Shown piece after piece: positions 8,166-52,854 of a stretch of 64,000 nucleotides of DNA (positions are counted from its first letter, which is position 1; every line of letters begins with the position of its first letter). Position numbers and translations under genes: made by a program. Source of the stretch: Cyanophora paradoxa CCMP329 (taxonomy: Eukaryota > Plantae > Glaucophyta); NCBI GenBank assembly GCA_004431415.1, contig QPMI01000071.1:372001-436000 (forward strand). Reading direction: 5' to 3'. Below the pieces are notes generated by a model. The model worked only from the letters and a program-made list of their open reading frames with translations. It was not told the origin of the DNA and searched no databases.

Positions 8166-8197
<32 letters not shown>

Positions 8198-10070: not shown

Positions 10071-10212
10071 CGCTGAACGCGCTCGGCGTGAACTTCGCAC
10101 CCCGAGCTTTCGGGTCGACGTACCCGCCGTTGAGTGCGAGCGTACCCGGAAAGGTTGATCGCCCAGGTCGGGCGCAGACTGCCGCACCAGCACGCAGCGC
10201 TGGATTGGGCGG

Positions 10213-13564: not shown

Positions 13565-13750
13565 CCGCCCTGCGCTCGGCGATGCCCATCTTCGTGGGGC
13601 AGCTGCGGCTCCTGCTGGGCCTCCCCCCGCTCGACCCGGCGCTCTCGCCCTACGCCCGCTCGGACGCCCCGCCGGCCCCGCCGGCCCGGCTCCTGACCTG
13701 CCCCGAGACCGCCATCTGCGACTGGGAGGTCAACGTCCTCGCCCGCGGCC

Positions 13751-13782
<32 letters not shown>

Positions 13783-15212: not shown

Positions 15213-16155
15213 CCGCGGACCCTGGTATAGAGCCCTGGCTTAGGACTTGGTATAGAGCTCTTGCTTAGGTGCCCTCTCCTTCGATAATTATAATTGCACA
15301 TGCGCATGCATATGCACATGCATCTGCTTTCATCTGTAACTGCGCATGCTGATCGTGATTAAAGTGATCATGCATATACTATGATATATGATCGATTACG
15401 CAACGTGCTCGCAAATTTAAAATCAGGATCTAGGCGCGGCAGATCTAGAGCAGTCTAGACAGAGGGAAGGTGGGGGAGTGCGGGGGAAGGGGGCGGGGGG
15501 TTCCGGCCATGGTGCGGATCCGGATGCGGCCGATCGGGTGCCCGCTTTGCTGCGCTCTACGTATATATACCCTCTGCCCGCCGCGCATCCCCGTATACGC
15601 TCTTCTGGGCCACCTGCACCCCCTTTCCATGCATTTGGCCACCTTATCGATATCCAGCGCCACCCTGGCCCCACCTCTTCCGATCCGTCGACGTCGTCGA
15701 CCTCTTCCGATCCGTCGACGTCGTCCTTCCCTCCCCTTTCCCCCGCCCCGGCGCGTTGATTCACCGCCCACGCCCACGCCCCCCCCCCCCCCCCCCCCCA
15801 CCCCTTCTGGCCCTCCCCGGTCCCCCTCTTCGCTTTCTCCCCCGCGCCCCAAGGCCTTCCTTCCAGGCGCCAGCTTTCCTGCTTCACGCAAGCGCAGCTT
15901 GTACCCGCGTCCGACCTGCGTGACCAGATCTAGAAGCGGCACCCCCCGTTCTGCACAGGCGTCGCAGATCTAGTCCGACGGTCCGGAAGCAGCAGTGGCC
16001 GTGCTCATTCCGTACTCTCCTCGAGAGGTATACGGTATAGGTTTACCCATTTTTGATGTTGATTTGATTAATGGTATAAATGAGGGGGGCCGCAGCCGGG
16101 GCGGGGAGCGAATTCCGAATTTGCCAATGCCGGGCTGGCGTTCGTAATATTTACA

Positions 16156-18788
16156 TTATTGCGGGACGAAATCTTCGGACGAAATTGACTCCACATCCTG
16201 CGCAGACAGGACACGATGTTATATTTAGGCTCGCCATGCACATACATGGATTGGGCTGCAGCCGGAGTGGTGCGGCGAACCCGGAGGTAGGAGGTGGAGA
16301 TGTGCAGGTCGGTGGCCCAGTCCTCCTCCTCCAGAACATCGTACTCGTTCGCATCCATGTCCGGCTCCGCGGCTTCCTGCACGACTCATGTACACGCTTA
16401 CTATATTGGTCGCTTACAGGGGTCGTGCTTTACTTTCGCACGAATCGGTAGACTCGCAATTGCAAGTTTGCACCTGGGTTTCGGAGTCTAGGTGATAGTC
16501 TTGGTATTCGATGCAGCCAGAGCGAAACGTCTCCTTGCATGGTCCCCCCCAAGCGGGACATTGCTCCACCCTCTGCCGGACACCGCAGGGCCACCGCAGA
16601 TTATAATACTACGAAAGTAGTTGAGCGGCATATATACGTACTAGTATGTACTTGTTCCCTGGGCCCCCGCACCTGCGTGCAAGCGGGAGGAACGGTGAGG
16701 GAGTCTGGATTTGCTCATGACCAAAGGCCGCGGGCGACGGGGAACGAACTGGGCCGGATCTCCCACCGTAAATTTATGGTCTTCGCACCAAAGGTCGTGG
16801 TAGCAATCAAAATGGAACCGCTCCTCCACGCTGCAGTGCACGGGGTCGGAGCCACATCGCATCAAGATCGGCCGCAGCGCTAGCGGGCGGCCGTGCACGT
16901 GGCCGCGGGCGCCGAGCAGTGCCACACCAGGGTGTGCAGGGAATGTCGTCTGGTGCGCCGAAACTTTTTGTCTCGAGTGTGAAGCTAGGGAATTGCAGCT
17001 TGAACTTGGCTTTGGCGAGGTTTCCCCAGTCATATGTACTCTCCCATTCGTCGAATTTGTATAAGTAGGGATCCGTAATCGTGGTGGCTGAGCGCATGCA
17101 GGCCGCCTCGATTTTGTCCCACGGGACAGGGGCTGGTGATTCACGTAGGATGTGGCTAACTTGTAGGACGCCCCCGCTTGACTCGTCAGCGATGTCCACC
17201 ACCAGACTCACGAGCTCCTTCGCCTCCTCCTCCGTCAGGTTGCCATCCGCCTTCTCGGTCTCCCATTTCGATTTCTGCGCTTGCCCACGCCGGTGCACGC
17301 GTTCAATTGAAGTGGGAACATAGCATCGATAGTTATATCGATCGATATACATCATGGTCTACTAGCTATAGGCTATCGTTCAATAATATAGTCTATATAT
17401 CATATATATATATATATATTTGAATCATAGCTTCGCATCAATAATTCTATATCTTCTATAGCTATGATTGATTATAAGGCTCTACGAATTCGGACAGCGC
17501 GTGGCCATGTTTACCGCTGGCCATGTGATCTATTGTTCTATGCTTTTGGCGAGCGCGCGGGTACCGCCGCAATGAACTTCTCGTTCTGCTGAGCCGCCGC
17601 ATCCCCGAGGTTCTTCGTGACCTCCGCCATGGTGTGCTGCGCCTTTTGCATCGAGACCACATCCTCGAGCGCCATCATCCCCGCCCCCTTGTTGATGAGC
17701 GTTGCGATCTTGGCCTCCTTTTCGGTCCGCGCGAGCTCCGCCGCCGTGTTAGCCGCGCATGTGTCCGAGGCGAACACGCGCAGGGTGTTGACAGCGTGGC
17801 TGGCCGAGCGGCAGATCAGGGACTGGAGTGCGCACGCGGAGCCTCGGAGCCCTGTCAAAGGACTCGGGAAGTAGGGCACCATGGCTCGCAATCTGCGATT
17901 TGGGTAGCTGTGCCTCCTTGAAGAAGCTTGGCGATGTACGAGTAGGCCCTGGGATGGGCGCAGGCGGTGGTGACGAGCTCGGGCGTGCCTGCCTGCAGGG
18001 CTCCGTAGATGTAACGCGGCGGCAAAGCTGTCGTACTCGACCATGTCCCGCAATTGGGAGCTGCGGAATAGCTATACTCGTCTCCCATGGGTTCAGGTTT
18101 TCCGCAGCCTATCACGCCAGGTCCGTAATCGTAGTCGAAAGTACAGTGGTACGGGTAGACTGCCGTCACCGGCGGGCTGTCCAACAATTGCAAGTCTTGG
18201 ACAGATTTAGATCCAACATATATAGCAGCCTGAGGGCGCACCAGGGGGTGCAGGCGGCGGTCGTGCCTCCAAAATTTCCCTTCGACAAGTAGTAGGCGGC
18301 CCCTTCCGTGCCCGATCTGCCGCACGCGTCGGCGAGGGTTTCGTTCGTGAGCTGTCCAGTAATCGTCTTTGTTAGAAGCGGAGTCCCGCTGCAGCCTGTT
18401 GCCGGGTAAGTTTCAATAGTAGACAGCGCCGGGCTGCGGGCCGGGCGAAGCCATGATCAGAACGCATGTACGTGTGCATGCGGTGCTGGCGCTGCTGATG
18501 ATCATATGCATGATGCACACCATGGCGAGCAAGCCCATTTCGTCCCATAAGTGTCGCCCGCGTCTTTTACGGAATTGTAGTTGGAGACGCCCAGCGTTGA
18601 GCACACCTGCACGCCGGGCGAGAGTTCGAGAGTTCACGCGTATATATGTATACGCGTATACGCGTGCAGATACGCACCGCGATTTTGTCTTGCTCTGTGG
18701 CATAGTTTTTGATCGAACGAGTGATTTCCGCTGTCCCGGAGCAATCGGCGCTCTTCCACCCGCTGACTTTCGACCCAGTTGTGCCCAT
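16156..18788 (-). CDS. Novel Cys-module protein A: N-myristoylation motif, CxPC repeats, helical insert, acidic tail (about 10-11 exons)
   Basis: Spliced by hand: MGTTGSKVSGWKSADCSGT...KIA|VCSTLG...WACSPC|PALSTIETYPATGCSGTP...AACTPC|PPVT...YSAAPNCGT...ADCEPC|HAVNTLRVFASDTCAAN...FIAA|KSKWE...DIPCTPC|VEERFHFDCYHDLWCEDH...|EAAEPDMDANEYDVLEEEDW...YLR|DVESISSEDFVPQ*. Junction phases are consistent. The stretch 16470-16780 is ambiguous (possible indel). Confidence 0.7.
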
Positions 18789-18972: not shown

Positions 18973-19174
18973 CTGTAGGACGGCTTTTTTATAGCTAAAT
19001 TAGCTGTAGTTTTAAATTGCCGTAAATTGCCGAGAGGCCGAAATCTGCAATTTAGCATCACGGCAATGTAGCTGGGGGTAGGTGATTTCTTTGGCCGCCA
19101 TAGAGCGGACGTCTGGACTCTGGACTCGGCAATTTATCGCCACGGCATTTATCGCAATTTAAGCAATCCTACAG
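18973..19174. mobile_element. MITE family 1, copy a (Tc1/mariner-like, TA target-site duplication)
   Basis: TA|CTGTAGGA...TCCTACAG|TA. The internal sequence (tgccgtaaattgccgagaggccgaa...ccgccatagagc...cggcaatttatcgccacggca) is homologous to 54797-55016. Confidence 0.75.
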
Positions 19175-19528
19175 TAAACAACTGGTCCGTCTGGACACTT
19201 CGAAAAAATTCAAACAACTGGCGCCGACTCGAGCTCTGCATGCAGCTGCGCATGCCGGCAGCCGACTCATTGCCGAGTCATTGCCGAGTCAATGCCGACT
19301 ACGGTAACCCTCATGATCAGGGCCAACTAAGTATATAGCTACTAGTACTACGGTAGTAGCCTAGGCTCAGCGCCGAGTCAGCGGCTGCCTAGTACAGTCT
19401 GTACAGACTGTACAGTAGCTTCGTTTAAAGACTGCAGTTTTCAAGTTTCAAGCCTTGAATTTGAAGTTTACCACATGTGCACGTGAACATTAAAATATTG
19501 TGTAAAACTTTCAAGTTTTACAGCACTA

Positions 19529-19820
19529 CCGTGTAAGACTTAAATACCGCGTCACAAATTAGCGCGTTCCAAAAATTTGGGCCCGATTTGCGCTTTACCG
19601 CGCTACCAAATTACCGCGTTCCATCGTCTTCGAAAATGTATTATTTGTTAGCAAAGGGGGTAATACTGCGCTACCAAATTACTGCGTTCTAAAAATTTTG
19701 AGCGCGGTAATTTGGCAGCGCGGTATTTTTTTTGGTGAATTACCGGCCACAGTCTCTAGACACCAGCACTGCGGGGGCTGCCCGGTAGTTAAGTCAGCGC
19801 GGTATATAAGTCTTACACGG
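19529..19820. mobile_element. MITE with 23-bp terminal inverted repeats (CCGTGTAAGACTTA(A/T)ATACCGCG)
   Basis: The inverted repeats match at 22 of 23 positions. Left flank is TA, right flank TC. Internal direct and inverted subrepeats taccgcgctaccaaattaccgcg. Confidence 0.75.
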
Positions 19821-20726
19821 TCGTAGTACATATATGTATGCGAAGTCTAGCTAGGATACCTAGTACTCGTTTGATTTTCGAAAAAATTAAACGCTCGAAG
19901 GCTCTTTCCCGGTCACGGCCGACTCACGGGTACTGGTATATTATGCCATGAATCCCGGCATCCCGGGGGGCCGGGAGCCCGGGACTCCGGGAGTCGGGCC
20001 GGGGCCCGGGAGTCCCGGAACTCGGAAGTTGCCGCCGAACTTGCCGGAACCGGACCGTGACGGCCCGGGGGCCGGGACTCCGGGAGTCCGGGAGTCCGGG
20101 ACGTGACGTCGACGGGCCGCGGCCGGGACAGTCACGGTCGGCGGGACTCCGCCGGGTCGGGACTCCCGGGCCCGGGCCGGGAGGCACCGCCGCCGCCGCC
20201 CGCCGGCATGCGCAGCCTCAGGGCCTGGCAGTGCGGCAGTACTAGCTATACTAGTGCTGCCGCTGCTGCGGCACTGCTGCCAGGCTGTACCGTGAGTACC
20301 GTGACAGACACTGACAGTGCCGCACTGCAGCCGCAGTACTAGTGCGGTTCCGAATTCGAATTCGAAGTTCTACTACGTATACGCTGCCTACGCAGTGTAG
20401 TACCGTAGTACGCACACGGGACGTACGGTACGTAACAGTACTACGGTAGGCTGGAGCTCATCACTGAGTCATGCATGATCAGCGGCGAGCGGTCGAGTAC
20501 CGGTAGTAGAGTACGCCGCGCCTCTCCGCGGCCTTTCCAAGTTCCGAAGTTGAGCGCGAGCGGCAAAACTGCACATAGACCCACTGGTAACACACACATG
20601 TACACGTATATATACGTACATGTATACGTATTAGCCAATAGATCTAGATTAGGGTCCTTTAATTTGAACCCCTTCGTTGAACCCCGGCCCGCGCAGGTTA
20701 CCTAGGCCTGGTAACTCCCGTCGAAC

Positions 20727-23700
20727 ATGGGAGCCGATCTTTCAAAGTTCATCAAACCTTCGCCGGCGAGGTGCTACGATGCCGAGGACTGTAAAGGATC
20801 AATACGTATCTCGCGCACGGACACGTAAGTACATAGCACGATATATTATGAAGAAGTACACTTGTACGTGTGTGTCTGTTCACTCCTTGCGTTCCGCACC
20901 GCGCACGCAGTAACGCGAACGTGATTTCCCTCTGCTCGGACCCCTCGCACATCTCTGGCTATCAGCGAGGAAGCGCATCCTGCGTGCCTGCCAAACTGCT
21001 CTGCTACGCCTCCAGGTGATCGCGATCGATTCGGCTTCGAGCATGCGCAATTGCTCTTGCCGACATTCGCCCTTGTTCACAGCGATTGCTCTGGAGCGTT
21101 CACACTTGGAAAAGATCCGGCATCCGGCAATCTGGTCACTCATTAGTGCGCGCGCGCTTGGCCGATTCCGTGGCCTTCCAGAGGTAGTATACTCCAGTGT
21201 CGCTCAAGCTTATAATTACGAATTGCGCGTACGCAGCCAGCCTACGGGAACGTCCGACGCCGATGCATTCGCCCGTTGCCCTGCAGCGCTGTCGTACAAG
21301 AACGGAAACGACAACACATGCCGCCCTGCCCAAAACTTTATTGCATGTCACAAGGACTGGAACTGCAAGAGTACCGGAAGCGACGTCACTCATGTACTGG
21401 GAGAGGACCCGTGCGCCATCGTTTGATTCTCTGATTTGTGCCCGCGACGCCGGCCACGGCCACGACCGATTGCGCACTTCGAATTCTCACTTTACTCTCC
21501 CGTCGTTTGCAGCGCCAAGTGCCCTGCAGTTACTGCGAGCTGGAGCCTCAACGGGAACGGGAACTGCAACCCCCGGGCCCTCATGTGCTTCTCCGATAGC
21601 CAATGCACGAGTACTCCGACGGTCCCCCGAGACGCGGCCGGCAATCTCTACCCTCTGTAGTGCGCTTGGAATTGCGAGGTTTCTTGGGCGCGCTGAACGT
21701 TTAGCTCGCACTCCGTTGCAAAAGCCAGCAGCTGGGGCAGCGGTTTCCGATTGCAAAGATTAACTGCACCTGTCTTGCAGCCAGCCGACGGGTCTCTCGG
21801 ACTACGACGCGTGGCTCCGTTGCCCGGACGGGTGCGAAAAAACATATACATATAATGAAGGGAACACTTCAAATGCGCACGTATTGCCTGGTTTTGTGCT
21901 TCTCGAGAGGTCACATCGATATCGCGATCGGCAGGACGCAAGCGTTTAAAGATGCGACGTCGCTCCGATGCAACTCTGGAGTAAAGAAAGGCGGAAATTG
22001 CTACCAGGTGAATAAAGATTGATGCTTGCTTATATATGAACTGGGCAGCGCCCGGCGCCCCGACACACCTCACAATTGAATGCGATGGCAATATTAATTA
22101 TATATAATGCGTCCTCGCACCCGACACACGTGGTGTCTGACACACGCGCGCGAACGCATGTATACGTACAGAGTTTCAATTGCTCATCAGTGGATCCGAC
22201 GGGCTCTGACGTCACCCGCGCTTACGACGCGTATGCCATGCATTGCATATAACATGCCTTCTCGGAATGCTATCTCTGACCAGTCCGGATCCGTGCACGT
22301 GGCTGACTTTGCAACTGCGCGTGCGATCGTCATTAGTTCAAAGTGCCCGGATTCAGCGAACTCGTTCAAAAAGGACGGAACTTGGGTATGCAAAGCGGCG
22401 AGCCTGCATTGCTTTAGCGATACGTGCGCTATTTGTTCGGCGTCCATTCGACAGCGTCGAAGATGACAGCCGCGATCGATCGACGACAGGGCGTGCAAGA
22501 CTTCGCCGACAGCTGGAAAGGACGCCATCGGGAACAACGTTGAGCTGTAGTGCGCATCTTCGAACTCTAGATCGCACGTGATTAATATTTCTATCAAGTA
22601 TCAGCGATCGCCGCGAATTATAGGACTTGTACTCGTCTCTGACCGGCACGCTTCCAGCCAGCCTGCCGGGGTCACAGACGAGGAGGCCTGGGGGCGTTGT
22701 CCGGTGTGCTACAGCTAGCGCTCTAGAACTAAATGTTTTCCATCACACAACTCTTCTTGAAAGTCGTTGAAACGGTTCTGCTCAGCCTGGCACCCATACG
22801 TTCATGGAAATGGATTCTACTTGGTGCAAAGCTGCCATAAAAGGGACTGCCTGGTACTTGAGCTTATACAATATGCATTTGTTTGCTTTTACGACTTTAT
22901 TTTCCCCACTTATAAAGTCAACTATATGCTTGTGATGTTTAGCCAGAAGACGTACGAGTTAAACTTATTACATATCAAAGTAGTATCCAGCGCTCGTCCT
23001 TCGAATTCATCAGTATTCAGCTGCAGCGATGTTCTCAACGCTCTCCGTGTGCAGTTAGCGCTATCTACAGCTACTCGGTTCTCATCCATTGCACCTGCGC
23101 GCAGCTACTCAGACCTGAAGTGTGGCTCCACTCCCACTTACGTCTTCGACAAGTCCAAGTGTCCGGCTGACACTCTGGCCGTGCGTAACTACAATGCATA
23201 TGCCATCTGCGCCTCGCGCCGCTGAGCTCGTGTTTGTCTGCATTCCTGATGCTGCGCAAATATATGCTACAGATAATATCGAACGATATTAACAGTGGAA
23301 GATGCACTGCAAGCAAGCTCGTCTGGTGACCTTAAAACAATTTTCTAAAGAAATGTAGGCGATACGTATACCCGAACTTAAGTTCAAGCGCGCAGCTTTG
23401 CGGACGCTTTGTGCGGCGGCGTTCCCACTCTTGGAAAAGATCCGGCATCCGGCAATCTGGTCACTCATTAGTGCGCGCGCGCTTGGCCGATTCCGTGGCC
23501 TTCCAGAGGTAGTATACTCCAGTGTCGCTCAAGCTTAGAATTACGAATTGCGCGTACGCAGCCAGCCTACGGGAACATCCGACGCCGATGCATTCGCCCG
23601 TTGCCCTGCAGCGCTGTCGTACAAGAACGGAAACGACAACACATGCCGCCTCGCCCAAAAATTTATTGCATGTCACAAGGACTGGAACTGCAAGAGTACC

Positions 23701-26700
23701 GGAAGCGACGTCACTCATGTACTGGGAGAGGACCCGTGCGCCATCGTTTGATTCACTGATTTGTGCCCGCGACGCCGGCCACGGCCACGACCGATTGCGC
23801 ACTTCGAATTCTCACTTTACTCTCCCGTCGTTTGCAGCGCCAAGTGCCCTGCAGTTACTGCGAGCTGGAGCCTCAACGGGAACGGGAACTGCAACCCCCG
23901 GGCCCTCGTGTGCTTCTCCGATAGCCAATGCACGAGTACTCCGACGGTCCCCCGAGACGCGGCCGGCAATCTCTACCCTCTGTAGTGCGCTTGCGAGGTT
24001 TCTTGGGCGCGCTGAACGTTTAGCTCGCACTCCGTTGCAAAAGCCAGCAGCTGGGGCAGCGGTTTCCGATTGCAAAGATTAACTGCACCTGTCTTGCAGC
24101 CAGCCGACGGGTCTCTCGGACTACGACGCGTGGCTCCGTTGCCCGGACGGGTGCGAACCAACCCAATGAAGGGAACGCGTGAAACCGCGTTGGCTGTATT
24201 GGGGCTTATGATTCTCGAGAGTTCACATCGATATCGGCAGGACGCAAGCGTTCAAAGATGCGTCGTCGCCTTATTGCAATTACAGAGTCAAGATAGGCGG
24301 GAATTGCTACCAGGTAATCATTATCAGCGCTGGATGCTTTAGGATCATTATATATATATAACTACATGCATATGCATATTTACAGTTTCATGGTTCCCGA
24401 ATATTAATGGACGACGCATCCTTGCACCACGTGCACGTGCATGATATCCAGACCTGACACGCCTTTTGCTCGTCCAGAGTCTTGATTGCACCTCCACGGA
24501 TCCAACGGGGGCTGACGTCACCCGCGCGTACGACGTGTAAGCCATGCATAAGACGGCCCTATCGAGATCCGAAGTGGTATTCGTAACCAGCCCATGCGCA
24601 TGTGATCGATCTCAGCACGAGGTGCCCGGCTTCGGCGAACTCATTCAAGCAAGATGGCAGTTCGGAGTGCAAGGCAGCGAACCTGCTTTGCTATAGCGAC
24701 ACGTGCGCAGATTCTCGGTTTCCTTATTGCCGTCTGTCAAAGAGACTGCTTCTGAATCCGTGACAGGAAGTGCAACTCTTCGCCGACATCTGCAAAGGAC
24801 GCTCTCGGGAACGCCGTTGAGCTGTAGTGCGCATTTAATTTGCGTTTGTGGTATACTCAGTCTAAAGTGCTCGAGCTCGCGTTATCTACCCGCGGTCTCT
24901 TCGAACTCGTCCCTTGTTGCCGTTGCCGGCTCTGACGCGCGAGATGCTAGCCAGCCAGCCGGAGTCACAAACGAGGAGGCCTGGGGACGCTGCCCGGTGC
25001 GCTCTTGCACATGCATGCTACATATGTGCAGTGCATTGCTCTTGAGAAAGCATTGTTTGTAATTACATTCGCGTACGCTGCACATTTCCTGCTCAGCCTG
25101 GCACCCAAGCGGTCAAGGAAACCAATTCTTCGTGCAAAGCCGACATTCACAAAGGGACTGCCTGGTGAATATTGTTATCGCTTTAATGTCGCTGCCTGCA
25201 CTCTGATCACATCGATCGCACCTGCGCGCAGTTACTCAGACCTGAAGTGTGGCTCCACTCCCACTTACGTCTTCGACAAGTCCAAGTGTCCGGCTGACAC
25301 TCTGGCCGTGCGCAAACACACAACGTAATGAGCTAGCTGTATAATGTCATGTAGCTGTGCACACACGAATTCTACGCTGAGTTTTGCTGTCGGCATCTCT
25401 AACGTTAACCGTACCCTTTTACAAATCTTTCAGGTCGTTGCAAAGAATGAAAGGGATCCCAATTACGGTGTTTGTATGCCGCAAAAGCTCGTCTGGTAGG
25501 CCATTGACTTCACATCCAAGGGGCTCCGTACTGATCCGGAGCAGCTATTCGAGCAACAACTGCTCGGATGCCGGAACAATTACGAGCTACGATCAGTAGT
25601 GAGCCCGCGCATACGCATTCCGTTCATGGCCGGAAGGGTTCGTGTTGTATTTGATGTCATCTTACGACCTCATCACAGCCAGCCAGCTGGAGTTTCAAAC
25701 GAGCAAGCGTGGGAGCGCTGTCCGGTGCGAACGAATGCCTAGACCCGGTTTTATGGACTCTACGTGATACTGATCCCACATTTCTAGATCGGCACCCGGG
25801 CGATCAAAGAAGCGAATTCTACCGAGTGCCGCTACAGCTCCACTCTGGACCTGGGCTATTCCTGGTAACAAACCTTGTTGACAATACCAATTGATATCGA
25901 GATACATGCCCGCTTGCAGCTACTCAGACCCAAATTGTCGCTCCACTCCCACCATTGTCTTCGACAAATCGAAGTGCCCGGCTGGCACTGCAGCTGTGCG
26001 TGCAAAAGTCCTCGACCCCTTTCCTCGTCGGCTACCACTCTAATGATATAACCCTTTTGCAAATCTTCAGACCAGTCCAAGGAGTCCAATGGAAGCCAAC
26101 TTCAATGGTTGCTTGCCAGCAAAGCTCGCCTGGTAGGCTAGACTATATATTTCATATCAAAAATTAATATTCAACTAATCTGGAGCAGCTTTACGACTTC
26201 CGATTGCTCGGATGCCGGAACAGTTACCAGCTACGACCAGTAGTGAGCCCGCGCCTTCCAATCAAAATTGAAGCACTGATTATTATATTCGCGCATATAA
26301 TCTTATAATATAATTAGAACGTTGCGTTCACGGAAATCTGACGTGTACATGTACAGCCAGCCAGCTGGTGTCACAAACGAGCAAGCGTGGGAGCGCTGTC
26401 CGGTGCGCTCGACTTCGAATTCCTAGACCTGGTATAGCTTTTCTCGCCTCCGCGATGGATACTGATCCCACATCTCTAGATCGGCACCCAAGCGTTCAAG
26501 GAAGCGAATTCGTTCGGATGCAAGAACTACAACCTCCAGTATGGAGTTGCCTGGTATTCGTTAATTCAAGCTTTCGATATCGAGAACTTCAGCTTGCAAA
26601 TTGCAATTGTAGCCATAATATTCATGTATGCATATGCCTGCGCGCAGCTACTCGGACCTGAAGTGCGGCTCCACTCCCACCATCGTCTTCGACAAATCGA

Positions 26701-29700
26701 AGTGCCCGGCTGGCACTGTAGCTGTGCGTACGCGTGCGCCAAATCATCGAAGTGCCCGGCAGGCACTGTCGCTGTGCGGTTGTGTGAAACTTGACACTTG
26801 CATCTCGCATGCTCTTAATTGTTTGAAAGATTCGATCGCGAACTCGACAATCCTGACCATAACTACAGACAGCTTCAAGACACGCTGGGGGAATCCAAGG
26901 ACGGTGCTCGATAGCCAAGCTCGCCTGGTAGGCAAGACAGTGCAAAATACCGGTATCACTGCGAATTTCGAAACTGATTCGACGTGGCAGCTACATGAAC
27001 AAGGATTGCTCGGACTCCGGAACAATCACCGAATACGATGACTAGTGCGTTGACGCCCTGCATTGCAACTGCATTTTGAATTCGACTTTGTTACCAACAC
27101 TTGTGCAGCCAACCGGCTGGGGTCACGAACGAGCAAGCCTGGGCACGCTGTCCGGTGCGAAATTATTTGAATAAAAAGGCTCATTCATGATCATCGAATT
27201 GGCACTTAAGCTTGTAATTGTGCTCACGATACATGTATTTTTTTCAGCCTGGAACAAAAGCGATTCAGATCCCCAACGACTACGTGCAGTGCCGAACCTA
27301 CCCAACACATTATATCCACTGGGGCACACCCTGGTGATTGGTTTATTAAGAGAATCGCTAGCCACATAAATACAGAGGAAGATAATTGCATGCGCATTGT
27401 CAACCTTGTCCGTACTCGCGCCCGCGCGCAGCTATTCCGACTTGAACTGCACGTCTACCCCCACGTACGTCTTCGACAAGTCACAGTGTCCTGCAAACAC
27501 ACTGGCCTATGGCGTGCGTGAAAGTCAGCTCCTCTGGAAAATCGATCAGCGGTTAAGAATCCTATCTCGCAGAAGCTCTTATATAGCGGCCAGTACCAAT
27601 GCACCACAGCCAAGCTCAACTGGTAGCTGCAATATTGATTCCGATTGCGCCGGCACCCCAGCCTGGCCCGCTTCAAAATTTCGCGCCTCGTCTGAACCGG
27701 AATATGTATAGCTTCTCGAACGCAGACTGCTCGGGTTCCGTCACGACAACCAACTACGAACGCTAGTGCGCTTTACGCTCTTTTCATGATCACTATAAAT
27801 CATGAACCATGGAGGGACGGACGGCGCCCTGAAATTTAGATTGCCGCCTTTTGGTTTTACAGCTATAAGTATACAGCGAAGGTTATATACATATCTGACC
27901 AAGGTCTCATAGTCACGAATACCCCATCTCGGCTGAAGAGGCGTGGAAGCGCTGCCCCGTAAGTTGCTCTACATTGCGGAAACATTGTCCGAATTCCCAG
28001 AAATGACGCATGCTCACATACACGCGTACGTGTAAAATATCATTCCAGCTCTCCACACTGTCTGTGAAGAACGGGAACGAGGACTCGCAATTGTGCACGA
28101 AGTTATCGAACACTTATCTGGGCAATGTAACTGAATGGTATGTGGACGTGTTATGCATATGCTCTCTCAATTGTAGCTGCATATGCACATGTATTTCTAG
28201 ACTGTACCAAACAACGGACTCGCGTGCAGCTACTCGGATTTGCAATGCTCCACGACCCCTACAATCGTTTTCGACAAAACAAAATGTCCGACAGGCACTG
28301 TAGCGACACGGGTGCGCCGACTTTGCTTCACGCGAATAGCGCGTCAATCGATCGCGCCATTTACGTATCGAATGCTGCAGCCGTATACGAAAGACGACAG
28401 CGGGGTCTGCACCACATACAAGCTCACCTGGTAGCTAATTAATATAAAGCATAAGTTATTTTCATATTTAAATTCAAGCTCAATGTTGATCTACCAATAT
28501 CGAAATAGCTTCTCCGGCAAAGATTGCTCGGGAGAAGCCACTTTCACCAGCTACGACAAATAGTGCGCACGTTTGCGCCTGTTGGTTACGAAAGCAAAGC
28601 CACATGCTGAACTCCTGAACAGCCAACCAGCCCCGTATGTGGACTACAGCACTTATAGCTATCCGCCAAAGACAATCAGCGTCAGCGACGACGAGGCCAT
28701 GCGGCGTTGCCCTATGGGGACGCAGTCCGTCAAGGAAGGCGGCACGCCCACCAGTCAGTGCAAGACCAGCGGCGTGCACATGGGCGTTCAATGCTTCGTG
28801 AGCACATGCATATGCGCATGCGCATGCGCTGCCACGCATTGCTTCAGCCTTCGACTCATGATCATCGCTTCAACCTTTGCAGTCGGACGCCGAGTGCAAG
28901 ACGGGCGGGGCGTGGCAGGTTTCGATGTGCGTGCCGTTCCACGTTCTCGTACGCGTGCTGGCGTCCCCGGGGCCGGGGCCCACGTGCATTCGCATGTATA
29001 TTTATTATTCGACAAATTAGATTAACTGAAATCGCTTGCGCTTTCTTATAGATCTTCTATTGCTAAATGTATTCACGTTTTTCTTGCGCAGCGAGAAGTG
29101 CCCCTTCGACACGACCCAGTCTGTGCTCCCGGTCCTGTCCCCGACCTGCTTCTCTCGCGGCGATAACTTGCGTTTGCCGAGTGCTCTCGCCGAGTGGTGC
29201 GTTCTCGTATGTAGCTAGGTATAGCTCAAAATTTCTCCGGATCTTCCACGGGGCACTCCACCCCCCTTCGAAAATTCCCACTCCTCCTCCCCTCCCTCCC
29301 TCCCTCCCTCCCTCCCCCCCCCCCCCCCCCCCCCGCCTCCACTTCCACAATGAATGGGCCTTCTCCGATCGCAGTTACACGAAGCCGAACTGCGAAGGGA
29401 CTGGAGTATTGACGTTCAAACAAGGCGTCGACAAGTATTTTAAGTCGGTTCCTTGTCCGAAGGGTTTGCACTTGCACACACGCATCCGCCGCGCCTCGCC
29501 TCCTCGTCGAACGTATTTGAATCGGTATCGTATATATACGTAGGTACTACGGCATCGCACAAGATTTACCATGAACAAGGCACAGCGTTCGGGTGCGAGA
29601 ATAGGGCGATGTGCTTCCAGAACGAATATTGGTGAGCTTGAAATTAAAACATGTTCGAGAACTTCTCGATCGCCGTACGCGTACGGGTTGCTCCTTGCGA

Positions 29701-31058
29701 TTGATGATTTCCGATGCAGCCGACCTACATATCTGTACGGAACCCTTGATGGACCGACGAAGCCCCCCGTTTACGGAGAAACAAGACACGTGGACACGTC
29801 AGTGAACTTTGCTTTACGTTTGCGCGCGTTGGCTCGACTGAACGGCTCCACTAACCGCGGCTCTCCTCTATTCGTACTTGGCAGGTTTACGTGCAGTCAT
29901 ATGAACGAGCGTGATATCGATGGCGTGGCATACATAAAAGAAGAACCAGTCGGCGGCGTCGCAGCGAAGGCCGGCCCTCTCTTCGGGCAGACGGAGTACG
30001 GTCCCTGCCAACGGGTCGCCCCCAGATGCTATTTACAGGTGGGTGTTTTTTTCGAATATATTCGCCGGTTTCGGCTGCGTTACATTGGCCGGTACCGTTC
30101 GAAATTCGAAATGCAGGCCAATTGCGAAGGCGGACCACTCTATGGGACTTCCAGGTGCTCGAAGATTACAATTACGTGAACGATTTCGTCATCGCTGTAA
30201 CGATCCTAACAATATTGCAGCGCTGCGTATGTTATGTCCATGTGGAAGCAAGGTGGTTTTAATTTTCTTGCTTCATCTTTTATTTAAGAGCTCAAACGGA
30301 TGCTGCCTGGATCCCAATCCCAAGGCAAAATTCTCCCGAACAAATTTGTCGTGTGCTCCAAGGGTATGCAAAGTTATATGGAATTCCAAAATGAAGAGTG
30401 TCAAAACTTCGTGCGTGTCCTCGATATTTTGGCTATCTGTGCCTCGGAGAGAGCTTAAGCTCAAGTGTCGAGCGCGTGCGCGCAGACGTTCCCGAACCGC
30501 CTGGACGCCAATGTCGCCGTCGTTGAAGAGGACAGAGCGCTCGAGGTGTGCGGCGCTTTCGTCCCCACCGCCCCCCCCCCCCCCCCACCCCACCCCTCCC
30601 CCCTACCCCCCCCCCACACACACACACCCACCCTTCCACCCCTTCCCAAAGCTAGAGAAAGCTAGAGCTAGACCCCTCATATATAGCCCCGTATATAAAG
30701 GAGGGGGAGACTCTGAGACCCTCGGATCGAGAGGTTGTGTCACATACCTATATCTAAGATCGTGCTATATCGAAATAATCGAGCTAGATCGAAAGAATTT
30801 ACTATATCTAATTATATGTAATTATATATATAAGATCCTGTATCTAAGATCGAAATAAATGGAACGCGCGCGCAGGATTCGGAGATGGACTGCGATTTTG
30901 ATGACGACTTCGAATGCGATGCCTTCAGCTCGCCTTCAGCTCACGACCACGAGGCCGAGGTGCGGTCCCTGTGCTTTTATAATTAAATAGCTGATTTGCA
31001 TCTGACTGGGTTTACGTGGGATGGGTGGCTGCAGACATGTGCTGCACTGGACGCGTAG
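20727..31058 (+). CDS. Novel Cys-module repeat protein B: about 60 exons, about 1,500 aa, about 11 tandem ~105-aa eight-Cys dyads, N-myristoylation motif, acidic tail
   Basis: ATG at 20727 (MGADLSKFIKPSPARCYDAEDCKGS) with an in-frame TAA at 20712. A continuous phase-consistent GT-AG exon chain repeats QPAGVxxExAWxRCP|xGTxAxKE..C..C|YSDLxCxSTPTxVFDKSKCPAxT|..C..KLxC|Y/F....CSxxGT..YDxY. It ends ...LDANVAVVEEDRALE|DSEMDCDFDDDF...|TCAALDA* at TAG 31056-31058. The terminal exons are less certain than the repeat exons. Confidence 0.8.
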
Positions 31059-31768
31059 AGAAACTTGAAAGGAACTGCGCGCGGCATATATATGCTGCGG
31101 ATCGGCGGCGCCTTCTGAATTTGTTTCTAGGATAGGGCTGTTTTCTAGTCAGTTGCACTTGTACGTATACATTGCAATTGACGTCGACGCGTCATATACA
31201 CATTCGTGCGCGCACTCGCGACTGCTCAGCGGCTATCGCCTCTCCAGAAAAGAGGATGGTGCGGGGCGAGGATTTACACGTCCACGTGAGAGATCTAGAC
31301 GTGCTTTGCTTTTGATTGGACTATTACTGCGGGGAGAGGGACCGCAAGGGATTGGTGAAGTCAATACGAAGGCCAAATGATCATGATCACCGTCGACAGT
31401 ATTGATGCGGATCCCGACGGCAGAAATGATCATGACAGCGGATAAGATCTAGAGGGGCGGGGACGGAAAGGGGAATGAAAGGGATGGTGTGGATAGATCT
31501 AGAGATCTAGAGCGCCCTGCGGCAGCCAACGGATGGATCCGGATAGGCCAGAGTCCCCCCGCCCACCCGTGCCTCCCCCCCCCTCCCCTCCCTTTCCCTG
31601 CCCCCCTTCCTTCTGTCTAGACCGCTCTAGATCGGTCTAGACCTACTATGAATATGCGTGCACGTGCACGTGGCTCTGTGAGTCAGTAATCATGATAAAT
31701 TCAATCAGCAGTTACAGATGAGAGCATGCAAATACCGAAGGAGAGGGCAACTGCGCAAAAGCCCGCAG

Positions 31769-32598
31769 CTACCCGGCGCCCGCCGGCGCCTTGCCCGCCG
31801 CTCGCCGCGAGAGCCCCGCCCCGGCCCCCGCCGAGGGCGCCCCCGCGCGCCGCGCCGCCTCGCCCTTGCCCGCCGCTTTTGCCGCCGCCGCCGCCTCCGC
31901 CGCCGGCCGAGCCTCCGCGGAGGGCGCCGCCCCGACGTCCGCACCGGCGCCGGCGCCCGCGCCAGCCGCGTCCCGCCCGCGCCCGCCGCGTCGGCCTGCG
32001 CCTTGGCCGCCGCCTCCGCCGCCTTCCTCCGGCGCTTCTCCCGCCGGTACCGCAGCTGCCTCACGAAGCCCGTCACAATCGGAATCGCCACCGGCAGCGC
32101 GATCGGAATGTAGACCGCCGCCTGGGGTACGGGTGTCAGGCGGATGAGCGGGGAGAGGGGGGCGGGGCGAGGACCGGGGGGTACCTTGTGCTCGTCGGGG
32201 AAGTACATCATTCCGAGCATCGTCGGGTCGAAGAAAGCATCCCGCGAGGCCTGCGGGGGTACGCGATTAGATGGGGGCAGAAGAAAGGAGGGGTACGGCT
32301 ATCGCACCACGAGGGCGCGGCGGGCGGCGGAGAGGGCGGCGCTGAGGGCCGCCCGCGGGTCCAGAGACGCCACCGCCGCGCGGGCCTGCGGGAGGCGGTC
32401 GGGCGGGTACGGCATCGGGAGGGGGGTAGGGGGCAGCGCACGTCGCGGAGCTGCTCGACTGCGAGGTCGCAGAGGTTCCGAATGTGGTCCCCAACGACCT
32501 GGGGGGGTACGCGTAAGAGACGGGCGGGGGGGTACGGGATGCGAGCGGGGTACCATGTTCTTCTGCTGGTCGACGAGGGCTGTGAGGGAGCGGAGGGA

Positions 32599-32630
<32 letters not shown>

Positions 32631-34385
32631 GGCCGCGGGCGAGGACGTCGATTTCCCAGTCGCAGATGGCGGTCTCGGGGCAGGTCAGAAGCCGGGCCGG
32701 CGGGGCCGGCGGCGGGGCGTCCGAGCGGGCATAGGGCGAGAGCGCCGGGTCGAGCGGGGGAAGGCCCAGCAGGAGCCGCAGCTGCCCGACGAAGATGGGC
32801 ATGGCCGAGCGGAGGGCGGCCCGCGCCTCGGACTCGGGATCGGTCCCGTTCGGAACGTGCGCGAGGGCGAGGCCGCCCCAGCCGGGGACCAGAAAGGCCC
32901 CCTCGGCCGAGAGGCGGCCGCCGGGCAGGCGCAGGTGCAGCGGCGAGCGCGCCGCCGACGGGACGAACGCCACGAAGTGGACCGGGGGGTCCAGCGTCAG
33001 CGCCGAGTCGAGGTTCCAGCTGCGCACACCCCAGGGATCGCAGGGGTACGGGGGCAAGGGAAGCGAGGGGGACGGCGCACGCGTTGGCGTCGAGGACGAA
33101 GGGGAGGTGCTCGGCCTCGAAGACGTACCCCCCGAGGGCCTCGTCACGCGTCGGCTCGCGGGCCCAGTGCACGTGCCGCAGGACCTGAGGGCCCGGGGGG
33201 GAAGAGTTAGGGGGTACAAGGCTTCATCCTGGGGGTACACCCGCCTGGGTGTCGAGGGTGAAGGAGGCAACGGGGGCGAGGGCGTTCAGGATGCCTCCGA
33301 AGTAGGCTGTGAGGGTACGGAGGCGTGGGCGTGGTACACGGTCGGGGCGCGCGGAGCCGCCGCACCGTCCGCGAGGGGACCAATGGCGGAGAGGGCGCGG
33401 GAGTGGGCGGGGGTACGCGAGGATGGGTCTTCGTCGAGAACGGACACTGACACGCGGTACGAGTCCGCGAGGCGAATCGACCGGTCGCGCCCCGCGGGGC
33501 TCTGGGGCGGAGGGGGGTACGCGTCAGGGCCGCTTGGGGGGTACAGACAGCCCGCGCGGGCCGTACCTTGGTGTCCGGGGCGCCGACGAGCGGGATAAGG
33601 CGCTCCCATGCGAAGCGCGCGCAGGCCTGGAGCGCGGCGTCGACGTTCTTGTACCCTGCTAAGTCGTGAGCGGCCAGGCGCCGGCGGCTCGCGAGTCGAG
33701 GGGCGCACCGTCCGCGAAGACCCAGCCGTGGAGCTGCCGCCCGGCGCGGAGCAGGCGCCACGGCGCGCTGGGGTCCGGGTCGGGCCGCTCGAGGAGGAAG
33801 AACGTGAACGAGTACTGCGGGCGGACCAGCGGCCCCAGCGCCGCGTCCACCGCTGCGGGCGCGCGGGCGGTCGGCGGGCGTGACGGGCGGCGGCGGAAGC
33901 GCGTGGGAGCGGCCGCACCGTCGTCCGTGTCATCGTGCGCGAAGCCGGGCGGCTCGTCTGCAACCCGCTCGTCGACGTTGACGTCGAGCTCCAACGCCGG
34001 CTGCACGCCCGGCGGCCGCGACTCCCGGAGCACTTGCACGAAGTGCTCATCGTCCTTGAACGCGCCCGGCGGCCCGCCGCCGCCTCCCCGTAGCCGCACG
34101 ATTTCGATTGAGAGCGGGACGGTCATCGGGGCCTGCGAGCGCGCGGTCGGGGGCTCGCGCGTCTGCGAGCGAGCGGAAGCGGCGGCTCACCATGCGGCTC
34201 AGCTCGTCGATCGCAGCGTTCGGCAGCGGGGCGCGGTGGATCTTCGTCGTGTGCCACCAGACGACGACGGACACGAGCAGGGCGCCCATGTAAATGCAAG
34301 CTATGGTGGACCGCTTGCCTGCGCGCCCCGACCGCTTCAGCGCTCCCGCGGCGAGCGCAGCGGGAGTGCGATGCCACGAACCCAT
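31769..34385 (-). CDS. PIGS: GPI transamidase component PIG-S (Gpi17), full-length copy
   Basis: N-terminal TM followed by WWHTTKIHRAPLP, internal FLVPGWGG, C-terminal AFFDPTMLGMMYFPDEHK...VYIPIALPVAIP TM. One apparent 1-nt indel in the Ala-rich tail (about 31975), probably a sequencing error. Confidence 0.88.
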
Positions 34386-34568
34386 CTTGAGGTAGCTGCT
34401 GTATAGATCGACGGTGGCTAGAACAGCTGTCGGGCCCGCAGACCAGGCGAACGGAGAGGGGGGGCCAGCGAGCGGCGAGCCTGGTCGCGTCTCAACGTAC
34501 CCCCAGCCGTCTGTACCCCCCCCAACGAGAAGCTCGCGGAAGCTGCCAAGCCCAGGCCCGGCTTTACA

Positions 34569-37072
34569 ATGAGCACGGGAAAGAAAGTGGTGGAGGACAA
34601 GGTACGCAGCGACGCGCCGCGGACCGCAGCGCCTTCGTTTTTGAATCGTTCCGGCGTCCGGCAGCAACTGTCTCGTGTCCGAGCGGCGCAGAAGCACCCT
34701 GCTAACAAGACCTGCTTCGTGTGCGGCGAGAAGGGTGCGCCGCCGCGGATGAGCGCCTCAACGCCGTCGCCTCCGACCGCTCGGTTTCCGCGCCGCCAGG
34801 ACCGCAGTACATCTGCTCGAACTTCCACACGTTCATCTGCACAGGATGCAGCGGGATCCAGTGCGCACCAGGCCTCCTAGAACCGGTTTGCGCTCTCATT
34901 CTGACGCCTGCCCGCAGCCGCGAGTTCTCGCACCGCGTGAAAGGCATCAGCATGAGTACTTTCTCCGCTGACGAGGCCCAGGCAATCGAGGTCCGCCGGC
35001 TTCTCGAAGATCAAATCCCGTTGCGACACAGAGCGTTTCGCGGCCGCAGGACGGAGGGAACGAGGTCGCGGCAAAGAGCTGGCTCGCGAAGTACGAAGAC
35101 CGCGACCGGGGGCGCCCCGACGCAAGCGACCCGAAGAAGCTGCGTGAGTTCATCAAGTCCGGTGCGCACATGAACGTCATAGCGGTCTTTTGGCGCGTGC
35201 TGACGTAGTGCGCTCCTCCGTTTCTTTTCCTTCTCTTGTACACGGCAGTGTTCGTCGAGAAGGTGAACGCGGCCCCCGACGCGCTTCGCCGAACCGCCCG
35301 TGCTGACTGCGTCGCGCAGCGGTACTACCGCACGTACAACGCCGAGCGCGAGAAGGAAAAGGCGAAGGAGAAGGAGGCAGCGCAGGCCGCCAAAGCTTCC
35401 TCGTCGGCGCCCGCCGCAAAGGCGCCCCCCGTTCAGCCAGTGTCGAACATTCTGGGGGAGAACCCGCCCAAGCTTGTCGTCGGCCAGAGCGCGCCCCCGG
35501 CTGCTGCGAAGGTAGGGTCCTCTTTGGTTTATATCGGGCGGGCGGGCGGGAGGGCGGGCGGGCGAAGAGCTGACGTCCCGCCCGCAGTCCGCAAACCTGC
35601 TCGACGACGATTTCTTCACCGTTTCGACGCCGGGTGCGCTTTCTTCCGCGGAGCCTCTGCTGCGCGCGCCGCGCGGCTGAATCGGCCGCGCAGCGCCGGC
35701 CCGGCCCCCGGCGCAGCAGTCGGCGGCGAACGCGCTCGCAGACATCTTCGCGCAGCAGTCGCAGCCGAACAACCCGTTCGCGCAGCAGCAGCAGCAGCAG
35801 CAGCAGCCGCAGGGGTACTACGGCATGCCCCAGCAGGGGTACCCCCAGCAGCAGGCGATGGTGGCCCCGCAGTCTCACTACAGCTCCGGCGGCTTCGCGC
35901 CCGCCCCCGCGGCCGCTAACCCTTTCGCCCCCGCCCAGCCCGCCCTCCCGCCCGCCGCCTCCGCTCCCGCCGCCTCAGCCGACTGGAACCCGTTCGGCGG
36001 GGCCCCCGCCGCCCAGCCCCCCGCCTCCGCCCCTGCCGCCCACCAGCCCGCCGCCAGTTCCAACCCGTTCGCCCCCTCTCAGGCCGCGGCGCCAGCTCCG
36101 GCCCCGGCGCAGCAGTCATCTGCCGCCGATCTCCTGTTCGGCGGCCCGGCGCAGCCCGCGGCGCCGGCGGCGCCCGCGTCGGCCCCGGCCGGCGTGCGGC
36201 AGATGATCCCCATGTCAGCGCCCCCCACCAGCACCCCCCAGCAGCAGCAGGCGGCGCACAACGCGCACCTCGAGGATAGTGCGCCCCGCCCCTCTCCCCC
36301 GCTCCGACCGGCCGGCTGACGCTGACGCTGACGCGCCCCGCCCCGCCGCAGTGTTCGCGAGCTTCTCGGGGATGTCGACGGGCCCCAAACCGGCACAGCC
36401 GCAGCAGCCGCAGGCTCAGGCGATGGGCATGGGCATGGGTATGCAGCCGCAGGCGATGGGCATGCAGGGCATGAACCCGATGGTTGCCCAGCCGCAGCAG
36501 CAGGCCCAGGCCCAGGCCCAGGCCCAGCACGTGCAGGCGCAGCAGGCTCAGGCTCAGGCGCAGGCGCAGGCGCAGCAACAGCAGCAGCAGCAGCAGCGCG
36601 CGATGCAGATGGGCGGCATGATGGGATCCTTCGGCGGGATGCAGCAGCCGCAGCAGCATCAGCAGCAGCCGCAGCAGATGGGGATGATGGGAGGCATGCC
36701 TCAGCAGCAGCAGATGATGGGAATGCACCCGCAGATGATGATGGGGATGCAGCCCGGCACGAATCCGATGGAACAGCAGAAGATGCTCATGCAGCAGCAG
36801 CAGATGATGCAGCAGCATATGATGCAGCAGCAGATGATGCAGCAGCAAATGATGCAGCAGCAGATGATGCAGCGGCAAATGGCTATGGGCGGCATGCAGG
36901 GCATGCACCCGCAGATGGGCATGGTCCGCACGGCGCCCCGTTTCCCCGCCACGCTCTCTCTGTCTCCGTCCGACCTCGCTCGCAGATGCAGCAGCCGCAG
37001 CAGCCGGCGGCGGCCGCGGCCGCGGCGCCGCAGGCGGCCAAGCCGAACCCCCTCGCCGATCTCTTCTCGTAG
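34569..37072 (+). CDS. AGFG: AGFG/AGD14-type ArfGAP with NPF motifs and a Q/M-rich tail, copy 1
   Basis: Spliced: NKTCFVCGEK|GPQYICSNFHTFICTGCSGIH|REFSHRVKGISMSTFSADEAQAIE|DGGNEVAAKSWL, which is the CxxC-x16-CxxC zinc finger plus catalytic Arg. Four NPF motifs, LLDDDFF, and the ending NPLADLFS*. Confidence 0.9.
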
Positions 37073-37345
37073 CCCCCTCGATCTAGTCCCCCTCCCCTCC
37101 CCCCCACCCCCCTCTCTTTCGTGCCCCTCGGCCCGCCCGCCCGCCCCATCCCGCCCCGCTTTCGCCCCTTTCCCTCTCCGCCCCCCCGCCCCATCGAACC
37201 GTAGGTCGCTCGTACGTAGTGCATATCCGAATTCGATTACCACACCGGATCTATCAGTTTCCGAATTCCGAATGTGATTCGATTCGTAGTGCATATCCGA
37301 ATTCGATTCGTAGTGCATATCGATTCGTAGTGCATATCCGAATTC

Positions 37346-37798
37346 GATGAGCGGGGAGAGGGGGGCGGGGCGAGGACCGGGGGGTACCTTGTGCTCGTCG
37401 GGGAAGTACATCATTCCGAGCATCGTCGGGTCGAAGAAAGCATCCCGCGAGGCCTGCGGGGGTACGCGATTAGATGGGGGCAGAAGAAAGGAGGGGTACG
37501 GCTATCGCACCACGAGGGCGCGGCGGGCGGCGGAGAGGGCGGCGCTGAGGGCCGCCCGCGGGTCCAGAGACGCCACCGCCGCGCGGGCCTGCGGGAGGCG
37601 GTCGGGCGGGTACGGCATCGGAGGGGGGTAGGGGCAGCGCACGTCGCGGAGCTGCTCGACTGCGAGGTCGCAGAGGTTCCGAATGTGGTCCCCAACGACC
37701 TGGGGGGTACGCGTAAGAGACGGGCGGGGGGGTACGGGATGCGAGCGGGGTACCATGTTCTTCTGCTGGTCGACGAGGGCTGTGAGGGAGCGGAGGGA

Positions 37799-37830
<32 letters not shown>

Positions 37831-39584: not shown

Positions 39585-39770
39585 CTTGAGGTAGCTGCTG
39601 TATAGATCGACGGTGGCTAGAACAGCTGTCGGGCCCCGCAGACCAGGCGAACGGAGAGGGGGGGGCCAGCGAGCGGCGAGCCTGGTCGCGTCTCAACGTA
39701 CCCCCCAGCCGTCTGTACCCCCCCCAACGAGAAGCTCGCGGAAGCTGCCAAGCCCAGGCCCGGCTTTACA

Positions 39771-52822: not shown

Positions 52823-52854
<32 letters not shown>

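Follow-up and report, generated by a model that had tools for sequence, protein, structure and literature searches.

In a 64,000-nucleotide (nt) stretch of Cyanophora paradoxa CCMP329 DNA (contig QPMI01000071.1, positions 372,001 to 436,000 of the forward strand; hereafter the window), a run of short exons at 22658-28563, which an earlier note had described from the letters alone as six interchangeable five-exon cassettes, was found to be the middle part of a larger gene that extends far past it. We consider it likely that this is an ordinary, constitutively spliced gene of a Cyanophora-specific family which has been shaped by germ-line duplication and conversion. Its product would be a 1,515-amino-acid (aa) chain of beads, with 26 four-stranded mini-domains, each holding two disulfides (C1-C3 and C2-C4, by order of the cysteines) and a buried aromatic residue, and with an acidic tail. 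The array would have grown by duplication of a symmetric, phase 2-2 block of two modules. The conserved A, C, and E exons would serve as starting points for unequal crossover and gene conversion, which would keep the frames alike, and the B and D exons, coding for the last hairpin and the linker, would drift and be reassorted. Diversity would then reside in the germ line, from position to position in one molecule and from paralog to paralog, and not between splice isoforms.

Gene and cassette structure

The gene lies on the plus strand, where an exon-by-exon frame check joined 60 exons from an ATG to a stop (1,515 codons plus the stop, 0 internal stops). Its 107 cysteines comprise 104 in 26 four-Cys modules and 3 in the acidic tail. 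The gene sits in a low-GC island (about 50% GC, vs. 65-75% in the surroundings), its exons measure 44-175 nt and are mostly not multiples of three, and its introns measure 49-251 nt and have good splice sites; median lengths over the first 52 exons are 68 nt for exons and 90 nt for introns. Because genes of this alga carry 9.2 introns each, of 86 nt on average (PMC6704402), such small exons are normal in Cyanophora. The eight 3' exons past 29631 are model-based, and their summed length of 1,093 nt to the stop fits the RNA contig tails of 1,125-1,205 nt. A 36-nt intron called at 30253-30288, in the 3' module region, is uncertain. The layout is as follows.

20727-31058, plus strand: whole gene (exon-by-exon frame check; RNA contigs cover the exons over 22658-28562)
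20727-20747, plus strand: start codon with the N-myristoylation motif M-G-x-x-x-S-K (upstream in-frame stops nearby; strong acceptor at 20696)
28623-30410, plus strand: last four modules, more diverged, exons AB11 to J (the join from E10 to 28623 is a loose end in all three RNA runs; putative beyond it)
30486-31058, plus strand: three exons coding an Asp/Glu-rich tail (the paralog P0003 likewise ends in an acidic stretch, with 37% Asp plus Glu in its last 60 aa)

The six A-E cassettes of the earlier note are real: all of their exons have GT-AG ends and the quoted peptides are correct. Exon A is 46 nt long (phase 2-0), B 68-89 nt (0-2), C 76-82 nt (2-0), D 50-62 nt (0-2), and E 54-75 nt (2-2), so that among cassette exons of 46-89 nt A and C are of length 3n+1, B and D of length 3n+2, and only E of length 3n, with each cassette as a whole divisible by three.

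22658-23470, plus strand: cassette 1, A 22658-22703, B 22786-22853, C 23105-23180, D 23273-23325, E 23396-23470 (RNA and DNA contigs)
24951-25598, plus strand: cassette 2, A 24951-24996, B 25097-25164, C 25232-25307, D 25434-25495, E 25545-25598
25679-26242, plus strand: cassette 3, A 25679-25724, B 25788-25864, C 25920-25995, D 26071-26132, E 26189-26242 (RNA contigs X1 cover the exon bins)
26357-27044, plus strand: cassette 4, A 26357-26402, B 26480-26553, C 26648-26723, D 26869-26927, E 26991-27044 (joints 26926>26990 and 27044>27109)
27109-27765, plus strand: cassette 5, A 27109-27154, B 27248-27333, C 27432-27513, D 27573-27622, E 27712-27765 (in order in RNA contigs)
27913-28562, plus strand: cassette 6, A 27913-27958, B 28049-28137, C 28230-28311, D 28381-28430, E 28509-28562 (in order in three studies)

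The actual repeat unit is a four-Cys module of about 45-60 aa, and a cassette consists of one long and one short module, which is why A and C share one phase class and B and D another. As had been proposed, any exon can be joined to the next-class exon of a later cassette: all 75 such joins (15 per class) keep the frame and the junction residue, which is Cys at B/C and D/E and Tyr at E/A. The accompanying picture of a uniform array did not survive, as seven exons inside the span had been overlooked; these belong to two extra cassettes with other phases, of 2 and 5 exons, at 23562-24826 between cassettes 1 and 2. At 11 of 11 cassette borders, a phase-2 intron splits the Tyr codon that joins E and A; it is the sole intron so kept, the others differing between cassettes. 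Just over half (53%) of all possible skips within the span keep the frame. Since an in-frame exon block was duplicated, phase compatibility is obligatory and is no evidence for alternative splicing.

Introns near the first Cys of a module lie at slightly shifted codons or phases between repeats (21935-22423, 24241-24702, and 28797-28883, vs. the six cassettes). These near-intron pairs occur within one gene, and two cassettes are without three such introns, by intron gain, loss, or sliding.

Evidence from RNA contigs

Contigs from three RNA-type runs, each of a different study, and from one DNA-type run were aligned to 22620-28600; the RNA label of the runs is the tool's guess, and the contigs nonetheless skip GT-AG introns. 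Among the joints listed in RNA-type contigs, 11 GT-AG joints match cassette exons and all of them are consecutive. In six multi-piece RNA contigs (up to 1.9 kb, three studies) the offsets between pieces equal the in-order exon sum exactly, and contigs of 1.6-1.9 kb run unbranched across cassettes 4-6 in all three studies. No exon-skipping joint occurs among the RNA joints listed, at a contig depth of 3-17. Odd joints and loose ends at 24535 and 23426 were considered as candidates for skipping and were rejected, being reads of the upstream duplicate placed on the downstream copy. The RNA contigs contain no letters deviating from the reference in the three studies, and no strain variation is seen among these runs, which look like the same strain. 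The major isoform is the complete in-order exon chain and the gene is expressed; minor or induced isoforms may exist.

One RNA-type contig (depth 5) is unspliced over 23959-24109 and keeps the intron at 23985-24099, which may reflect retention, pre-mRNA, or DNA.

These data bear directly on the combinatorial isoforms that the earlier note had put forward, and on alternative splicing resembling that of MEG, Dscam, or brown-algal ROCO genes, with exons of later cassettes replacing those of earlier ones, perhaps only under stress or infection. The idea draws on the fact that every cross-cassette join keeps both frame and Cys, on the alternative splicing of tandem leucine-rich-repeat (LRR) exons in brown-algal ROCO genes (PMC11378527), and on the invisibility of rare forms in contig data. 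Against it stand the strictly consecutive joints and the unbranched contigs described above, obtained at low depth, as well as the short introns with good splice sites. Intron-intron complementarity is not above that of shuffles (longest helix 15, vs. 13-17), so that pairing of the docking/selector type is not in excess, and exons A-D are not multiples of three, which makes single-exon skips frame-breaking; in non-animal eukaryotes, moreover, intron retention and not skipping is believed to be prevalent (PMC6142364). We regard combinatorial splicing as very unlikely and favor the constitutive exon chain.

Duplication and probable conversion within the array

A 2.3-kb block of three cassettes is tandemly duplicated, as seen by self-BLAST and by exon and intron identity.

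21105-23429, plus strand: duplication copy 1, exons ABC1 to E3 (self-BLAST, exon/intron identity)
23430-25598, plus strand: duplication copy 2 (exon/intron comparison)
23396-23470, plus strand: chimeric E exon, whose last 41 nt are those of exon E0 (21105-21145), three cassettes upstream
23430-24162, plus strand: recent homogenisation tract, 98-99% identical to 21105-21843, introns included
26746-26778, plus strand: 33-nt intronic copy of the 3' end of an exon C, donor site included (2 mismatches and no acceptor)

The E exon at 23396-23470 carries an E0-type 3' end, and the crossover breakpoint of the duplication therefore lies inside an E exon. This breakpoint is bridged by a DNA contig (23156-23459), and RNA contig X1 record 1 is length-matched upstream of 23562. 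An assembly artefact was considered as the source of the duplication and rejected, since DNA contigs match both copies without mismatch and span the breakpoint.

The two copies have diverged very unevenly: over the first 740 nt, introns included, identity is 98-99%, whereas the next exons are 75-87% identical and the introns there are near random similarity. Farther along, exon C at 25232-25307 matches that at 23105-23180 in 75 of 76 nt, together with about 20 nt of upstream intron. Synonymous differences number 2/84 in the 23430-24162 tract vs. 30/72 downstream of it (p=4e-10), and 0/18 in the exon C pair vs. 9/26 in A+B (p=0.006). Selection at the protein level cannot preserve identity at synonymous sites or in introns; the simplest cause is therefore gene conversion or repeated unequal crossover, and we infer that the patchy identity arose by one or the other. 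Between-cassette distances for A, B, and C are correlated (0.65-0.79), while those for D, which are noisy, are uncorrelated. Loose ends of DNA contigs at A, C, and E borders, with depth peaks, mark paralogous exons elsewhere in the genome. The intronic copy at 26746-26778 is a leftover of local duplication.

The exon-level recombination suggested earlier is thus borne out by the chimeric exon and the patchy identity in so far as it means germ-line unequal crossover or gene conversion over evolutionary time, and not in the sense of a programmed process. A programmed somatic rearrangement or cassette conversion that assembles variant genes in single cells, like that of variable lymphocyte receptors (VLR), might have been read from the conversion-like tracts and from the A, C, and E exons of paralogs at other places in the genome. 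The germ-line gene is nevertheless complete, and the RNA contigs of three studies follow its sequence without a deviating letter. Neither donor pseudo-cassettes nor recombination signals were found nearby, a module profile found no donor cassettes in the window beyond the main gene and its divergent paralog, and every DNA joint is explained by a duplicate or a paralog. We consider such rearrangement exceedingly improbable, and germ-line duplication and conversion the better account of the same tracts.

Divergence of conserved and variable exons

By mean amino-acid identity between the six cassettes, B (0.33) and D (0.29) are variable, as had been noted; the conservation ascribed to A, C, and E applies to A (0.72) and C (0.76), with E intermediate (0.39) and the first E chimeric. 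The proportions of nonsynonymous and synonymous differences (pN and pS) follow the same order, with pN/pS over all 15 cassette pairs of 0.25 for A, 0.21 for C, 0.57 for E, 0.67 for B, and 0.88 for D, synonymous sites being near saturation. In the three closest pairs pN is 0.06 for A+C vs. 0.35 for B+D (p about 1e-17) and pN/pS is 0.22 vs. 0.74, with pN below pS in B+D too; synonymous divergence is likewise smaller in A+C (0.29) than in B+D (0.47; p=0.012). The excess of nonsynonymous change that the earlier note had looked to was not seen, pN/pS being below 1 in every exon class. B and D are far less constrained than A and C, which amounts to relaxed constraint without demonstrated positive selection. 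As a description, a scaffold with variable loops fits well, given the contrast in pN and the finding that B and D represent the same structural element in both module types.

The exon pair 24767-24826 and 22490-22549 differs at 9 nonsynonymous sites and 1 synonymous site (p=0.42), which hints at selection and is not significant.

Loops between fixed Cys are variable in most repeat proteins, and it is a serious possibility, held at less than even, that the variable exons are neutral, coding loops and linkers of a structural spacer that tolerates change and plays no role in recognition. The values of pN/pS below 1 in B and D and the absence of a signalling domain agree with this. What speaks against it is that there are many paralogous arrays with different loops in each and that the loop residues include exposed aromatics; near-saturated synonymous sites could, moreover, hide episodic selection.

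The four-cysteine module

The module follows the pattern C-[YFH]-x4-C-x(12-31)-C-P-x(12-17)-C, and the paralogs have equal spacing, with long and short modules alternating; Tyr, Phe, or His stands right after C1 in 40 of 40 paralog modules. Homology searches were run with single exons, exon alignments, and paralog proteins. An exon-built profile found five relatives among 1.84 billion representatives, all of them Cyanophora paradoxa gene models; the protein of the window gene itself was not among them. No Pfam match above the cut-off was obtained for exons or paralogs, PDB sequences gave 0 matches to the module, and the ESM Atlas gave 0 matches by features and, by shape, template-modelling (TM) scores only up to 0.39. 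Foldseek on PDB and on viral models was blank. Word-index homolog searches with P0001, P0002, and alignment A4, which are length-limited and weak, returned the query itself or nothing, and metagenome contigs did not contain the pattern (introns break such patterns); a search of contigs for the paralogs was likewise blank. Judged by sequence, the module family is undescribed and Cyanophora-specific, and it matches no known family.

AlphaFold models of paralog modules reached a predicted local distance difference test (pLDDT) score of 84 for two modules and 78 for a single one. Each module came out as a small beta domain, to which the long type adds a short helix; the two-module model has four strands per module, and the single-module model three strands and a helix. 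By position in these models, B and D would code for the last beta-hairpin and the linker, and A, C, and E for the first hairpin and the helix. TB domains head the structural listing for the single module, with Z of only 2.2-3.7: the properdin TB domain matched at Z 3.7 (root-mean-square deviation, rmsd, 2.7 A over 45 residues), a fibrillin hybrid domain at Z 2.7 (rmsd 2.2), and recifin A at Z 2.5 (38 of 41 residues), with every Z short of the level that the tool treats as trustworthy. A beta-gamma-crystallin Greek key was rejected, for its Z values of 2.1-3.7 came with rmsd mostly of 3-4.8 A and it leaves the Cys pattern unexplained. The module probably works as a reduced version of the TB/Tyr-lock fold while belonging to neither family, because the third disulfide of TB domains and recifin is missing.

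Support for the C1-C3 and C2-C4 pairing comes from one P0003 module and from the second module of the neighboring paralog, in both of which C1 and C3 are jointly lost and C2 and C4 are kept. An extra Cys pair is present in one P0001 module.

Protein ends and possible roles

The protein model contains no signal peptide, transmembrane helix, or glycosylphosphatidylinositol segment, and no hydrophobic N-terminal stretch. The motif M-G-x-x-x-S-K begins at 2 of 562 ATGs in the low-GC zones, those of the main gene and the neighboring paralog only (2 matches vs. 0.45 expected in the window); Gly2 with the favored Ser6 and Lys7 is present at both starts, the start codon of the main gene being a predicted one. 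The neighboring paralog lies head-to-head with the main gene, 1.9 kb apart, and includes a Cys-poor coiled stretch near 17850-17565.

16281-18788, minus strand: divergent paralog, M-G-x-x-x-S-K start at 18788, diverged modules, acidic exon near 16376-16281 (first five exons modelled)

Nested short inverted repeats (27-39 nt arms) lie at 19525-19824, between the two divergent genes, and may be a small non-autonomous element; 19015-19147 resembles 54828-54958 (80%).

These ends fit a cytosolic or ciliary protein which is anchored by myristate at the inner membrane face and whose four Cys bind metal or stay reduced, without disulfides. Besides the myristoylation motif and the missing signal peptide and transmembrane segment, the four Cys per module and the mere 7 N-glycosylation sequons for 68 Asn within the exons would agree with such a protein. 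The joint loss of C1 and C3 with C2 and C4 kept, however, fits disulfides and not a four-ligand site; the extra Cys pair in P0001 also argues for disulfides, and the nearest folds by rmsd are disulfide domains of matching connectivity (PMC11339948, PMC6713926). We therefore hold a reduced or metal-binding module to be unlikely and retain the disulfide-bonded one.

Several points weigh against our overall reading of a constitutively spliced gene for a disulfide-bonded, myristoylated bead chain. The 5' end of the gene is outside RNA coverage, and the RNA contigs are shallow (depth 3-17), so that rare variants are lost in contigs and the joints seen are those listed. Noise in the D alignments raises pS and pN alike, and the structural matches are weak (Z up to 3.7). 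Finally, disulfides normally need the secretory pathway, yet neither a signal peptide nor a membrane segment was found.

As to function, it is a less well supported suggestion, rated a little under even, that the protein would be N-myristoylated, membrane-tethered, and rod-like, with many different loops displayed for multivalent binding. A purely structural filament or spacer comes next in likelihood and is plausible. A bolder version, which we think quite unlikely, is a glaucophyte repertoire of myristoylated binder arrays that lack signal peptides and are built on a minimal two-disulfide, TB/Tyr-lock-like scaffold, in which exon borders enclose the variable hairpin. Conversion among the conserved exons would then exchange binding loops, both inside one gene and from gene to gene, at a pace that lets isolates differ, and modules might be skipped under certain conditions. 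If true, this would be a recognition system that arose independently in an alga, and it would place a TB-like fold in an organism that is not an animal.

Surrounding DNA

Inverted copies of a PIG-S-like gene end (PF10510, E 1.5e-6) with its downstream DNA flank the low-GC island, in which both the main gene and its paralog lie, at 13565-15500 and 31575-32819. They are 91-94% identical, and two further copies lie at 37346-39085 and 51571-53573. The resulting 16.5-kb inverted repeat was considered as a pair of transposon ends and rejected, its arms being the PIG-S-like gene end, of which the window holds four copies. A 5.1-kb tandem duplication (32143-37258 and 37346-42457, 99.6% identity) carries an ArfGAP-like gene with a Gln/Met-rich tail and is either recent or an assembly artefact. 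A long-exon FN3-repeat gene (57692-63998, plus strand; PF00041, E 1e-12) occupies a second low-GC zone and continues past the window, and several related GC-rich open reading frames (ORFs) at 2900-10100 and 48000-49400 resemble F-box/leucine-rich-repeat genes (73-91% DNA identity, patchy).

Comparison with known systems

In its genetics the gene is, by analogy, most like the exon-shuffled receptor genes of brown algae. The LRR-ROCO and NB-ARC-TPR genes of Ectocarpus (PMC3341825, PMC11378527) likewise form an algal multigene family of repeat proteins with exon-bordered repeats and reshuffling at the DNA level. In those genes one exon equals one repeat, whereas here two modules are spread over five out-of-register exons; diversifying selection and alternative splicing have been reported there and neither was detected here; and they have a GTPase or NB-ARC attached, whereas the Cyanophora exons and paralogs have no ROC-COR or NB-ARC Pfam match. 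The micro-exon genes (MEG) of Schistosoma (PMC10526429) share many short exons and a lineage-specific, Cys-bearing family, but their exons are mostly multiples of three (often 15 nt) and they have long introns, signal peptides, and many isoforms, against short introns, no signal peptide found, and one isoform seen at low depth in Cyanophora. Dscam1-type arrays choose one of several tandem exons of the same class; in Cyanophora the classes alternate, all are included, and intron pairing equals that of shuffles. VLR genes are incomplete in the germ line and have flanking donors, in contrast to a complete ORF that is expressed as written.

At the level of the protein, recifin A has Cys5-Tyr6, Cys11, Cys21, and Cys39, and the module has the same spacing and aromatic; in recifin the bonds are 5-21 and 11-39 and Tyr6 is buried (PMC11339948). 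Properdin has the same connectivity as recifin, I-III and II-V, equal to C1-C3 and C2-C4 of the module (PMC6713926). Together with the joint loss of C1 and C3 in two modules, these independent points strengthen the structural lead somewhat. The third disulfide (IV-VI) of recifin and TB domains is missing from the module, where Pro takes the place of the second Cys of the CC pair, and recifin has three disulfides ringing strand 3, whereas the module has four Cys only. TB or 8-Cys domains (PF00683) contain six to eight Cys with CC or CCC, unlike the module, which has no CC, and PF00683 gave no match at E up to 10 in 40 modules. The WAP domain (PF00095) gave a weak motif match at profile positions 4-25 (E 0.024 and 0.039), with a best score of 15.4 bits vs. 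a cut-off of 20.8, and its second half, with four further Cys, is missing from the module. Toxoplasma MIC7 (PMC7373427) is N-myristoylated, as the Cyanophora protein may be, has no signal peptide, and is built of tandem disulfide modules, but it has EGF domains and a transmembrane helix able to explain entry into the endoplasmic reticulum, neither of which the Cyanophora protein has.

The logic of the gene, in which recombination duplicates a symmetric exon block and keeps its copies alike, is already known. What is left is an undescribed small disulfide module, found in one alga only and arrayed in several genes. It may be related or analogous, in pared-down form, to the TB/Tyr-lock fold, which has so far been reported in animals, and it goes together with a myristoylation signal and without an export signal. 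If confirmed, the module would provide a 45-residue scaffold with a tolerant loop, a test of the origin of the TB fold, and a case of unusual protein trafficking in a glaucophyte.

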